64,000 bases of DNA from Macrostomum lignano (Eukaryota), in NCBI GenBank assembly GCA_002269645.1, contig NIVC01000390.1, positions 411,436 through 475,435 of the forward strand. The letters are read 5' to 3'. A program made the translations under genes and the position numbers. Below, one piece after another: positions 28,001 to 32,815 of this stretch. The stretch's first letter is position 1. The number at the start of each line of letters is the position of its first letter. The notes beneath the pieces are model-generated. The model searched no databases. It was not told the origin of the DNA and saw only the letters and a program-made list of their open reading frames with translations.

Positions 28001-31000
28001 GCCGTTTACCCTCAGCTAATGAATACTTACTTCCTTAGCAACACAGTTGCCGCTTAGCACAAGTGGTTCGCATCTTTTTAAAATTAATAGCTCGTACATG
28101 TTCGTACCTTCTAGATCTTTGTTGTTGGCTGCTCGAACTACAGTATATCACACGCTGACTCACGCTTTGTCTCGCGCATAATTGCGTGCTCTGTTGAGTT
28201 TTTCTGTTGAATTTTTTATTTTAGTTGAAGAGGGCTAAGCTTGTGTGCTAAGCTAAATGAATGGATGAGAGCCGCAATAGCTATTATAACATGTATAGGA
28301 AATAAGAATAACAATGCTTTTTGTGTGCTCTGCCTCGGTGTGTGTGTGCATAACAGTGTGCGCCGGGAGACGGGACTGGGTGTTTTTTTTCACCCTAGAC
28401 GCCGACTGAGGCCTGATTACGCAATCAACTTTCTCAACTCAGAGAGATGGGGAGCTGGCCTGGCTGAGCAGGAATTCCTGCAATTCTTTACTTGGTGCTA
28501 AAACTTCTTCTCTGAGTGACTGCATGGCTGCCTCCCCTCCAGACTCTGATGGTTATGTAACAGGCGGGCACTCGCAGACAACTGTCTGCCCCCCTGTCCC
28601 CTCCGGTGCCGCTGATGCATAATTCAATGCCTCACCCATCACCTTCAGCTTCGTTTTTTGTCTCTCCATCTGTCTGCTCTGCTCTGTCTGTCTCAAACTC
28701 AACTCTAAACTTCCAAGCCAATCATCCATTCCATTCAGCCATCGTTCCAGTGAGGTCGGCGCTAGGAAAAGAATTGATCGATTTCTGCAATAATTTTTCG
28801 GGAGATTGGATTGATTGCGCAAAGTGCGCTTAGAGTTTATTTGTCTCCGCAAATTTTATTGATTGATTGATTCTCATTGATTTTGCGAAGAAATGGCGCT
28901 GTTAATTTGTTTAATTTATCGATTTTTGCTATCCTTTCTTTTTATTCCTACGCAGGGCTTTTTCCGGCGCACAATACAGAAGAGTCTGCAGTACCATTGC
29001 AAATGGAGTGGCAGCTGCCAGATTGACAAGAACACTCGCAACCAGTGCCAGCAGTGCCGCTTCGCCAAGTGCCTGGCTGTGGGCATGGCTGCTGACTGTG
29101 AGTGCTGACTGGGAATAGTTAAAGCAGATTCTTTCCAGCAGAGCCTCAGTTGCTGGGCCATTCTCCCAGATCCTCAGTTGCTGGGCCATTCTCCCAGATC
29201 CTCAGTTGCTGGGCCAGTCTCCCAGATCCTCAGTTGCTGGGCCAGCCTCCCAGATCCTCAGTTGCTGGGCCAGTCTCCCAGATCCTCAGTTGCTGGGCCA
29301 GTCTCCCAGATCCTCAGTTGCTGGGCCATTCTCCCAGATCCTCAGTTGCTGGGCCAGTCTCCCAGATCCTCAGTTGCTGGGCCAGTCTCCCAGATCCTCA
29401 GTTGCTGGGCCATTCTCCCAGATCCTCAGTTGCTGGGCCAGCCTCCCAGATCCTCAGTTGCTGGGCCATTCTCCCAGATCCTCAGTTGCTGGGCCAGTCT
29501 CCCAGATCCTCAGTTGCTGGGCCAGTCTCACAGATCCTCAGTTGCTGGGCCATTCTCCCAGATCCTCAGTTGCTGGGCCAGTCTCCCAGATCCTCAGTTG
29601 CTGGGCCATTCTCCCAGATCCTCAGTTGCTGGGCCAGTCTCCCAGATCCTCAGTGGCTGGGCCAGTCTCCCAGATCCTCAGTGGCTGGGCCATTCTCCCA
29701 GATCCTCAGTGGCTGGGCCAGTCTCCCAGATCCTCAGTTGCTGGGCCAGTCTCCCAGATCCTCAGTGGCTGGGCCAGTCTCCCAGATCCTCAGTGGCTGG
29801 GTCAGGAACTCAGAAAAACTTGAATCCTGCACCGAAGCTTCCAACTCAAAGCCGAACTCCTTCCTACTCAATCCAGTGGTGCTCAACGAGAAGCAGCGAG
29901 TTGCCAAGCGGAAGTTGATCGAGGAGAACCGGATCCGCCGCTCAGTCGAAATCAAACGCCTACGCGAGGACGACCCGGACGTATCCGGCGGCGGCGGTGG
30001 CGGCGGCGGCTCAGACAGCGTCGGCGTCTCCGCTCTGTTCGATCCAGACGAGATGCCCGAGGAGGATCGAGCGACCATCGAGCTGGTGTCGGCCGCCTAT
30101 CAGCTGGCCTGGCTTCCGGCGGAACAGTCCAGTGCTAGTGTAAGCCGATATGTTCTAGCGCTCTCCTAGGTGCCGAAAGTACATTTTAGTGTGGATGCAG
30201 TGCCGAAAGTACATTTTAGTGTGGATGCAGAGTGCCGAAAATAGATTTTAGCGTGGCTACAGAGTGCTGGAAGTATATTTTGGCGTGGCTGAGGAGTGCC
30301 GGAAGTAGATTTAAGCCTGGCCGCAGAGTACCGGAAGTACATCTTAGCGTTTCTGAGAAGTGCCGGAAGTACATTTTAGCGTGGCTGTAGGGTGCCGGAA
30401 GTAAGTCTGGGGTGTACACTATGAGCGCCCGGACTAGGAGTAAGGTAAGCGCGTCTTTATTCGCGTGTAGCAGGCAGAAATGTCTTTAATACTTCTAATC
30501 CAACAGAAGCCGGCCTCAAGCGAAGCTGCACAAGCGGAAGCTCCATTCGCTGAACAGCTTGGCAACGCCGGCGCAAGCAGTAACGTATTGGACAGCCTGA
30601 CGCACCTGATGTCGCGCGCAGTCTCTTGCGTTATCAAATTTGCCAGAGGAATTCCTGGCTTCGCCGAGGTAAGAAAAAAGCTACTATTTCAAAAATATTG
30701 CCAGTAGTATGAGGCGGATTTATCCAAATTTTAAATGCGTGATTAAAATCGAAAAAAACTCCAGCTCAACGAAGACGACCAGTTTCTGCTATTGAAAAGC
30801 AGCTGCATGGAGATTCTCTGTCTGCGCGTTGCCTGTCGCTACAACAAGTTCACCGAGTCGCTCGCCCTGTCCAACGGTAATGTAGTAACCAAGGCAACCG
30901 TCCGACTCGGCCGGCTAGGCGAATTTGTTGAGCCGCTATTCGAATTCGCCGTTGGCCTGAGCCGCCTGGATTTGGACCGCTGCGAGGTCGCCCTGCTAGC

Positions 31001-32815
31001 GGGCGTGCTGCTCATGCAGAGTGACCGCATTGGCCTGCGCCAGCCCGACCGCATCGAGGCTGTGCAGGACGCCATCCTGCGCGCCTTCAAGCGCTACGTC
31101 ACCGAGCGCCGCGGCAGGAGGGGCGTCGATTGGGCCAAGATTCTCATGAAGGTGAGCGATATCGGGAGCTTTGAGAAATTGTGGGTAGCGGCTCAGAATG
31201 CTTGGGATTCCCGAGGGATAAAAATGGTATTACAGTGTTTGATAATGGGCTTCCTGTAGAGACAATGGGCTTCCAGTAGAGATTATGGGCTTCCTGTAGA
31301 GATGATGGACTTCCTGTAGAGATAAGAAACTTCCTGTAGAGATAAGAAACTTCCTGTAGAGATGATGGACTTCCTGTAGAGATAATGGACTTCCCGTAGA
31401 GATAATGGGCTTCCTGTAGAGATTATGGGCTTCCTGTAGAGATTATGGGCTTCCTGCAGAGATATAGATAAGAAACTTCCTGCAGAGGTAATGGGCTTCC
31501 TGTAGAGATTATGGGCTTCCTGCAGAGATAAGAAACTTCCTGCAGAGGTAATGGAATTCCTGTAGAGATTATGGGCTTCCTGTAGACATGATGGACTTAC
31601 TGTAGAGATATGAAACTTCCTATAGAGATAAGAAACTTCCTGTAGAGATGATGGACTTCCTGTAGAGATAATGGACTTCCCGTAGAGATAATGGGTTTCC
31701 TGTAGAGATAATGGGCTTCCTGCAGAGATAAGGAACTTCCTGTAGAGGTAATGACATTCCTGTAGAGATTATGGGCTTCCTGCAGAGATAATGGACTTCC
31801 TGTAGAGATATAAAACTTCCTGTAGAGATAAGAAACTTCCTGTTGAGATAATAGACTTCCCGTAGAGATAATGGACTTCCCGTAGAGATAATGGACTTCC
31901 CGTAGAGATAATGGGCTTCCTGCAGAGATAATGGGCTTCCTGCAGAGATAAGGAACTTCCTGTAGAGATAATGGGCTTCCTGCAGAGATAATGGGCTTCC
32001 TGCAGAGATAAGGAACTTCCTGTAAAGATAAGAAGCTTCCTGTAGAGATAAGAAACTTCTTGTAGAGATAAGAAGCTTCCTGTAGAGATAATGGACTTCC
32101 CGTAGAGATACTGGGCTTCCTGCAGAGATAAGGAACTTCCTGTAGAGGTAATGACATTCCTGTAGAGATGATGGACTTCCTGTAGAGATACTGGGCTTCC
32201 TGCAGAGATAAGGAACTTCCTGTAGAGGTAATGACATTCCTGTAGAGATGATGGACTTCCCGTAGAGATAATGGGCTTCCTGTAGAGATAATTGACTTCC
32301 CGTAGAGATAATGGGCTTCCTGCAGAGATAAGGAACTTCCTGTAAAGATAAGAAGCTTCCTGTAGAGATAATGGACTTCCCGTAGAGATAATGGGCTTCC
32401 TGCAGAGATAAATGGACTTCCCGTAGAGATAATGGGCTTCCTGTAGAGATAATGGACTTCCCGTAGAGATAATGGGCTTCCTGTAGAGATAATGGACTTC
32501 CCGTAGAGATAATGGGCTTCCTGCAGAGATAAGGAACTTCCTGTAGAGATAAGAAACTTTCTGTAAAGATAAGAAACTTCCTATAGAGATAAGAAACGGA
32601 ACTTTATCAAAGGCATAACTAATGCCGCCCAACACCCACAGGTCACAGACCTGCGCAGCATAGTCACCAGACAGGGAGACAACGTTCTGACGGCCAGATT
32701 CGACGCCGCCGGCGGCAACGAGGTGCCGCTGCTATTCATGAACATCTTCTGCGACCCGGAACCGCCCCTGGAGGCGGTGCCGGCCAAGCCAGAACCAGTT
32801 GAGCCGCAACTCTAA
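22060..32815 (+). CDS. THR: Thyroid hormone receptor-like nuclear receptor (NR1A), ~572 aa. Exons 22060(start uncertain)-22492, 27748-27905, 28956-29097, 29877-30139, 30507-30668, 30765-31151, 32642-32815
   Basis: Zinc fingers [22 protein letters not shown]|[31 protein letters not shown]-specific YIPSY before the DBD and T/A box [23 protein letters not shown] motifs [33 protein letters not shown]|VTDLR. Junction phases 1,0,1,0,0,0 are consistent. The N-terminal exon and the start codon are less certain. Confidence 0.9.
22570..23950. repeat. Minisatellite, 41-bp unit (to ~23490), then degenerate ~21-bp CTCAGATCCCAAATCGCA units (TR intron 1)
   Basis: CCCAAAATGACATCTCAGACTCGAAATGGCACTCCCGCACA. 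Confidence 0.95.
26330..27650. repeat. Compound (TCTG)n/(TG)n microsatellite (TR intron 1)
   Basis: Directly visible; explains the CLSV/QTDR ORFs. Confidence 0.98.
29142..29800. repeat. Minisatellite, 28-bp unit (TR intron 3)
   Basis: CTCAGTTGCTGGGCCAGTCTCCCAGATC. Confidence 0.97.
30170..30405. repeat. Degenerate ~31-bp minisatellite (TR intron 4)
   Basis: GTGCCGGAAGTACATTTTAGCGTGG-like units. Confidence 0.85.
31243..32597. repeat. Minisatellite, 20-bp unit (TR last intron)
   Basis: CTGTAGAGATAATGGGCTTC and variants. Confidence 0.97.

Follow-up and report, generated by a model that had tools for sequence, protein, structure and literature searches.

A thyroid hormone receptor orthologue in Macrostomum lignano with altered hormone-contact and coactivator-surface residues

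The 64,000-nucleotide stretch of Macrostomum lignano DNA analysed here (hereafter the window) comes from scaffold 390 of the Mlig_3_7 assembly (GCA_002269645.1, contig NIVC01000390.1), to which it is identical. It is eukaryotic and minisatellite-rich and carries MlTRa, a gene for a thyroid hormone receptor (TR; NR1A) with seven coding exons at 22060-32815 on the + strand. Our analysis leads to the view, to which we give a probability of roughly 0.6, that MlTRa is a selected TR orthologue that acts as a DNA-bound regulator and not as the vertebrate switch built on triiodothyronine (T3) and a charge clamp, its working mode resembling that of the oyster receptor CgTR. The DNA-binding half of the protein is strictly conserved, while the T3 anchors have shifted, as has the coactivator clamp, in a domain that is nonetheless under strong selection. 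DNA binding and output are inferred from the sequence and from published residue roles rather than demonstrated.

Residue positions are given in human TRbeta numbering, with the offset verified on the rat TRbeta sequence. MlTRa was aligned first with 22 diverse TRs and then with a larger set of 119, to which nine flatworm and ecdysozoan TRs were added. The alignment is free of gaps between the anchor motifs (FAxxxPGF, KVTDLR and PxLF) and the key residues, and a two-residue insertion in the loop between helices 11 and 12 (H11-H12) of MlTRa lies outside these stretches. A first-pass annotation of this DNA had read helix 12 as VPLLFMNIF with Asn in place of E457, and had proposed that H435 is Gln, that R282 is Cys and that R316 and R320 are kept. 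All of these assignments are borne out by the gap-free alignment to rat and human TRbeta and the 22 TRs. The states at the hormone pocket and at the activation function 2 (AF-2) surface, with those of the other TRs, are as follows.

30627-30629 (TGC), + strand: R282 to Cys; Lys in 56 of 60 non-vertebrate TRs, Arg in all vertebrates, Lys or Arg in 117 of 119
Exon 5, + strand: V284 to Ile; Val in 119 of 119
30645-30647 (AGA), + strand: K288 to Arg; Lys in 119 of 119
30783-30785, + strand: I302 to Phe; Ile or Val in 118 of 119
Exon 6, + strand: K306 kept as Lys
30825-30827, + strand: R316 kept as Arg
30837-30839, + strand: R320 kept as Arg
30870-30872, + strand: N331 to Ser, the same as in TRalpha
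32672-32674 (CAG), + strand: H435 to Gln; His in 116 of 118, Tyr in 2
Exon 7, + strand: L454 kept as Leu
32741-32743 (AAC), + strand: E457 to Asn; Glu in 93, Asp in 22 (mostly oyster duplicates), Asn in 2 (Mytilus and Dimorphilus), Ser in 1

In T3-bound receptors His435 forms a hydrogen bond with the 4'-hydroxyl of the hormone, while Arg282 and Asn331 bind its carboxylate (PMC11873584). The polar T3 anchors (282, 316, 320, 331 and 435) read Cys, Arg, Arg, Ser and Gln in MlTRa, with two of the five lost. The AF-2 core, LFMNIF, departs from the phi-phi-x-E-phi-phi pattern, and the Lys288/Glu457 clamp pair is not present. The coactivator surface of TRs is reportedly defined by a six-residue list given by Feng et al. 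in 1998 (V284, K288, I302, K306, L454 and E457); at these positions MlTRa carries Ile, Arg, Phe, Lys, Leu and Asn, so that four of the six differ. This surface is thus more altered than the first-pass annotation saw, with V284I, K288R and I302F in addition to E457N.

Five of the MlTRa states (Cys282, Ile284, Arg288, Phe302 and Gln435) are found in none of the 119 other TRs, and the full Cys/Ile/Arg/Phe/Gln/Asn combination is unique to MlTRa among the TRs compared, each kind of change having precedents. Furthermore, MlTRa is off consensus at 10 of the 56 ligand-binding domain (LBD) columns that are conserved at 90% or more, where most TRs depart at 0-3. Comparable departures among full-length sequences were seen only in the amphioxus TR (7) and an anonymous metagenomic TR (12); a score of 10 was also reached by P0059, but there the three final departures are gaps in the alignment.

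These residues suggest how MlTRa may work. By analogy with schistosome and oyster TRs, the protein would bind AGGTCA-type half-sites, probably together with RXR. High-affinity iodothyronine binding in the vertebrate pose is unlikely because Arg282 is Cys and His435 is Gln. At the AF-2 surface the acidic half of the clamp is lost through Glu457 to Asn, with three further changes (V284I, K288R and I302F) in the groove. Since the LBD has neither the AF-2 Glu nor the contacts that His435 makes with the phenol and Arg282 with the carboxylate, a canonical T3-triggered charge-clamp switch is unlikely. The default output would be ligand-independent repression or weak modulation, insensitive to T3, thyroxine (T4) and triiodothyroacetic acid (TRIAC), and any ligand or coregulator would be expected to differ from the vertebrate ones. 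The first-pass annotation had likewise regarded the gene as a TR homologue that may not respond to T3. Its identification of a TR orthologue in which the canonical T3 switch is unlikely stands, while its use of human TRbeta as the yardstick does not, given that position 282 is Lys in most non-vertebrate TRs. Its suggestion of a constitutive repressor is at most a possible reading, helix 12 being present with an intact hydrophobic face.

The closest functional parallel is CgTR of the oyster Crassostrea (Magallana) gigas, which acts as a repressor and shows no activation by T4, T3 or TRIAC (Huang et al. 2015, PMC4692385). Like MlTRa, CgTR is a lophotrochozoan NR1A protein with a canonical DNA-binding domain (DBD) and TR N-terminal signature (NTSS), and the two are 52-53% identical over DBD and LBD. 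The AF-2 core of CgTR is also non-consensus (QLLDLF), and about half of its T3-contact residues are changed. In contrast, CgTR keeps an acidic Asp at 457, His435, Lys at 282, Lys288, Val284 and Ile302, all of which are changed in MlTRa, and it has lost Leu454 and Phe455, both of which MlTRa retains.

Several observations weigh against the proposal that MlTRa is a CgTR-like regulator. With Arg at position 288 the clamp still has its basic side, and Asn is still able to form hydrogen bonds with a peptide backbone. The hydrophobic face of helix 12 (L-F-M-x-I-F) is intact and the only helix 12 difference between genomic copies of the gene is synonymous, which together argue that helix 12 retains some role. 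The arginines that bind a carboxylate, R316 and R320, are kept, and an acidic ligand is therefore still possible. Additionally, corepressors dock in the same groove between helices 3 and 5, and because this groove is altered in MlTRa, repression is not assured. Finally, a mussel TR, which has Asn at 457, is reported as needed for metamorphic competence (PMC8481496), indicating that this substitution does not amount to loss of function in vivo.

Some of the same observations bear on the alternative that MlTRa is still a ligand-activated activator, in which Arg365 and Asn535 would form a non-canonical clamp fitted to the coactivators of flatworms. Its ligand would be something other than T3, for instance a different derivative of iodotyrosine or thyronine, or an acidic lipophile unrelated to these. 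We regard this as unlikely but deserving of real weight. Purifying selection is strong over the whole LBD including helix 12; the hydrophobic helix 12 face, K306, L454, R316 and R320 are all kept; and the concerted change of four groove residues resembles remodelling more than decay. There is also a precedent in amphioxus, whose TR is described as binding TRIAC but not T3 with 8 of 18 contact residues changed (PMC4692385). However, the E457A substitution by itself abolishes NCOA binding in TRbeta, where binding of T3 and NCoR is kept (PMC7351129), CgTR with the milder Glu to Asp change is not activated by any hormone tested (PMC4692385), and no candidate ligand is known.

Comparison with other receptors puts the changes seen in the first-pass annotation in context: His435 is also absent from the TRs of parasitic flatworms, and loss of the AF-2 Glu is recurrent. 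SmTRalpha and SmTRbeta of Schistosoma mansoni and the other parasitic-flatworm TRs belong to the same phylum as MlTRa and share its NTSS and P-box, with Asn or Thr in place of His435. The Schistosoma and Calicophoron TRs (TRbeta in UniRef) additionally have Arg at the Lys288 position, as MlTRa does. These receptors keep the AF-2 Glu (YLHELF, YFHELF) and have lost R320, whereas MlTRa shows the reverse, and they are 600-1100 residues long with large insertions, whereas MlTRa is compact at 558 aa. The schistosome receptors form heterodimers with RXR and recognise half-sites of the AGGTCA type (Wu et al. 2007, PMC2045677).

The AF-2 Glu is replaced by Asn in Mytilus (P0038; AF-2 core HLLNLF) and Dimorphilus (P0041; QVANVF), independently of MlTRa, by Asp in the oyster (P0025), and in Ecdysozoa by Ala in Priapulus (P0133) and Thr in a tardigrade (P0128). 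The Mytilus and Dimorphilus receptors differ from MlTRa in that His435, Lys or Arg at 282, Val284, Lys288 and Ile302 are all kept. This repeated, independent loss among protostome TRs suggests that the canonical coactivator clamp is not constrained in non-chordate TRs. Human TRbeta mutants provide a further comparison, since E457A and the His435 variants of resistance to thyroid hormone affect positions also altered in MlTRa, and His435 is crucial for agonist action (PMC11873584). Those mutants, however, are single engineered or disease changes in a T3-tuned receptor, while MlTRa is natural and selected and combines many co-occurring changes.

The metagenomic TR homologue mentioned above (P0061; L004 3001-4998, ERZ27333047 contig k141_321387, from ENA) is the closest divergent relative. 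It encodes 665 aa in one uninterrupted open reading frame (ORF), with Tyr at 435, the AF-2 Glu kept and a long Ser-rich tail. Its LBD also contains an in-frame hydrophobic insertion of 23 residues, which may be a mini-intron that is read through.

The AlphaFold2 model of the LBD is a confident one (mean predicted local distance difference test score, pLDDT, 82.8) and has the canonical helices, with helix 1 at LBD residues 5-22, a disordered loop between helices 1 and 3, and a short helix 12 at PLLFMN (model residues 243-248; block pLDDT 74). The best structural matches in Foldseek were RAR, LXR and TR LBDs, a result that identifies the NR1 LBD fold without separating TR from RAR or LXR. The predicted fold of the MlTRa LBD is thus that of a standard NR1 LBD, helix 12 included.

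Some natural relatives of TR without AF-2, namely v-ErbA, TRalpha2 and Rev-erb, act as repressors or antagonists with helix 12 absent or replaced. MlTRa resembles them in combining a TR-type DBD with a C-terminus unable to form the canonical coactivator surface, but differs in having a helix 12 with a conserved hydrophobic face. It does not belong with the repressors that lack helix 12, as this helix is predicted and aligns without gaps to that of other TRs. A more doubtful proposal is that MlTRa is blind to both hormone and coactivator and serves as an antagonist or repressor partner of its paralogue MlTRb, or else that its Cys-containing pocket senses a new, non-iodothyronine ligand. If the MlTRb LBD were canonical, MlTRa could be a natural antagonist partner. 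The antagonist form of this proposal, if true, would make MlTRa a flatworm analogue of v-ErbA or of TRalpha2, the latter described as non-hormone-binding (PMC3047299), reached through point substitutions and not through loss of helix 12.

The assignment of MlTRa as an NR1A orthologue is drawn from similarity scores, motifs and introns. Among the 119 matches listed, its own cluster aside, all family-named proteins are TRs and the remainder are unnamed or 'hypothetical' (E 4e-127 to 4e-79). The top matches are mollusc, annelid, brachiopod and nemertean TRs (50-55% identity, E down to 4e-127), and the invertebrate TR matches as a whole (45-55% identity, E = 4e-127 to 1e-98) exclude chance similarity. 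By search scores the protein is much nearer to mollusc and annelid TRs than to neodermatan TRs. Each half taken alone also finds TRbeta as its best match in PDB, with 152 bits for the DBD and about 129 bits for the LBD, where RARalpha scores about 116. Queries with the published MlTRb DBD and with the MlTRa LBD alone recovered no M. lignano paralogue from the protein database, and protein similarity searches with MlTRa returned no other Macrostomum orthologues.

The motifs of the DNA-binding half agree with this assignment. The NTSS, a motif defined for TRs previously (PMC2045677), is present in its non-chordate form and encoded from 27790. It is followed by two C4 zinc fingers with the P-box CEGCKG (Pfam PF00105 is recorded for the product), and a TR T/A box lies downstream of the DBD. 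The DBD also carries non-chordate markers, with Met at DBD position 16 and without the two-residue insert at positions 33-34, and is the same as that of the MlTRa entry in PMC8363021. The first-pass annotation had rightly called the DBD, P-box and T/A box canonical, although the DBD exons (27790-27905 and 28956-29097) fall outside the range 30507-32815 to which it had attached them. Similarly, the MlTRa introns (CEGCK/G, GMAAD/L, GFAE/LNEDDQ and ILMK/VTDLR) correspond to the four conserved TR splice junctions, of which JP1 lies in the DBD, JP2 at the fourth hinge codon, JP3 in LBD motif I (group-specific) and JP4 in motif II (PMC2045677). The match of JP3 to the vertebrate position is taken from the description in that paper and not from vertebrate genomic DNA.

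The spliced model encodes 558 aa and matches at every residue GenBank PAA84071.1, labelled "hypothetical protein BOX15_Mlig033383g1", whose genomic locus agrees with the window at every base over 30.8 kb. Wu and LoVerde (2021, PMC8363021) list the locus on scaffold 390 (PAA73930.1/PAA84071.1) as MlTRa and place a second paralogue, MlTRb, on scaffold 73 with no GenBank protein. The range 30507-32815 holds only the last three (LBD) exons (30507-30668, 30765-31151 and 32642-32815), the first of which stops at 30668 and not 30669. All coding exons have AG/GT splice boundaries, and the gene is made up as follows.

22060..22492, + strand: coding exon 1; ATG and A/B domain (ends AKARGSS), located by tblastn with PAA73930.1; GT donor at 22493
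27790..27905, + strand: exon 2; TR N-terminal signature, then first zinc finger with P-box CEGCK/G; intron at JP1
28956..29097, + strand: exon 3; second zinc finger; fourth hinge codon split by the JP2 intron
29877..30139, + strand: exon 4; T/A box, hinge with a Gly8 run, helix 1
30507..30668, + strand: exon 5; disordered H1-H3 loop and helix 3; Cys at R282, Ile at V284, Arg at K288
30765..31151, + strand: exon 6; helices 4 to 10/11; ends ...ILMK (JP4)
31241..32592, no strand: 20-bp minisatellite of about 67 copies, non-coding, filling the last intron
32642..32815, + strand: exon 7; helix 11, helix 12 VPLLFMNIF, 21-residue Pro/Glu-rich tail, TAA stop at 32813-32815

The tail beyond helix 12, described in the first-pass annotation as rich in Pro and Glu, does have this composition, with 7 Pro and 4 Glu among its 21 residues.

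We considered whether the divergent helix 12 might be an annotation artefact, the real mRNA having another last exon with an LxxE-phi-F motif. The last intron is long (1.49 kb) and filled by repeats, and the UniProt model A0A1I8IWF1, made on the earlier ML2 assembly, differs at its extreme C-terminus. That protein still carries VPLLFMNIF, however, and differs only downstream of it. From VTDLR onward, exon 32642-32815 shows homology to the last exon of TRs, and it follows an intron at the conserved JP4. A sensitive tblastn search of the 64-kb window with annelid, human and schistosome C-termini (E up to 50) found no other homologue of a TR last exon, and only noise outside 32642-32749. Furthermore, a genome-guided RNA-seq transcriptome underlies the M. 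lignano gene annotation (PMC5730564), and the resulting PAA84071.1, identical to our spliced model, uses this exon. The exon for which cDNA confirmation had been suggested in the first-pass annotation thus has transcript-based support, and we consider an artefact here extremely improbable.

The assembly contains three near-identical copies of MlTRa, in the window, in NIVC01000985.1 and in NIVC01002523.1, a state that fits the known duplication in the DV1 line (PMC5730564). From the DBD to the end of helix 12 the copies differ by seven synonymous changes and one nonsynonymous change (A312V in the hinge), giving a ratio of nonsynonymous to synonymous rates (dN/dS) of 0.045 (P = 2.7e-4 against neutrality). 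Nonsynonymous changes are absent from the DBD and from helices 3 to 12, and the helix 12 segment has a single synonymous difference. Of the three nonsynonymous differences seen from the DBD onward, two lie in the Pro/Glu tail, marking it as the least constrained part. MlTRa is an expressed gene under purifying selection.

A rival reading is that the LBD is decaying, the gene being either a pseudogene or a duplicate left redundant and less constrained by the recent genome duplication, and that its odd residues are due to drift. In favour of decay, the MlTRa LBD is among the most divergent TR LBDs, and one of the three copies, that of NIVC01000985.1, has a 1-bp deletion (GGG to GG) in a G-run equivalent to window position 31001, which shifts the LBD frame and accounts for the truncated GenBank PAA73930.1. 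This deletion is of a kind typical of long-read homopolymer errors. It may reflect genuine loss of function in one duplicate or an error in the assembly. Reading frames are unbroken in the window copy and in the third one, and the gene model comes from RNA-seq. The Cys, Arg, Phe, Gln and Asn states are common to all three copies and are therefore older than the duplication. The pseudogene reading was rejected on dN/dS, and decay of the LBD in general appears very improbable.

MlTRa had already been catalogued, and divergence of AF-2 and pocket residues in invertebrate TRs is documented; what is new is the residue-level description in M. lignano, with the six-residue combination in a domain under purifying selection. 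We view MlTRa as an incremental data point and not as a surprise. The status of protostome TRs as hormone receptors is in question; that of the oyster is unresponsive, and no ligand-binding test of a flatworm TR was found in the literature on TRs that we consulted. With transgenesis available and RNAi widely used, M. lignano is a practical organism in which to study the in vivo role of an "AF-2-less" TR.

The last intron of MlTRa is 1490 bp in the window, compared with about 340-360 bp in the other copies (L001 11848-12191 and L002 10102-10465), owing to the 20-bp minisatellite. Repeat arrays occur in all introns of the gene, among them 22568-23489, a 1.3-kb (TGTC)n array at 26325-27624, 29139-29805 and 30170-30403. 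Downstream, from about 37007 to at least 42815 on the + strand, lies a 1195-aa gene with a large exon or ORF at 41206-43392 and an ANF_receptor domain (class-C receptor or periplasmic-binding-protein type; Pfam PF01094, E = 3e-26). An ORF or exon at 6698-7255 (+ strand) encodes a TMF_DNA_bd domain (TATA element modulatory factor or golgin TMF1-like; Pfam PF12329, E = 1.6e-10). TRF reported 41 tandem-repeat rows scoring at least 200 in the 64 kb, some overlapping and many 1-2 kb long with periods of 20-40 bp (for example 16036-17288, 18122-19580, 34996-36560, 37288-39222 and 60116-62271). Several of these repeats yield long spurious ORFs in six-frame scans.

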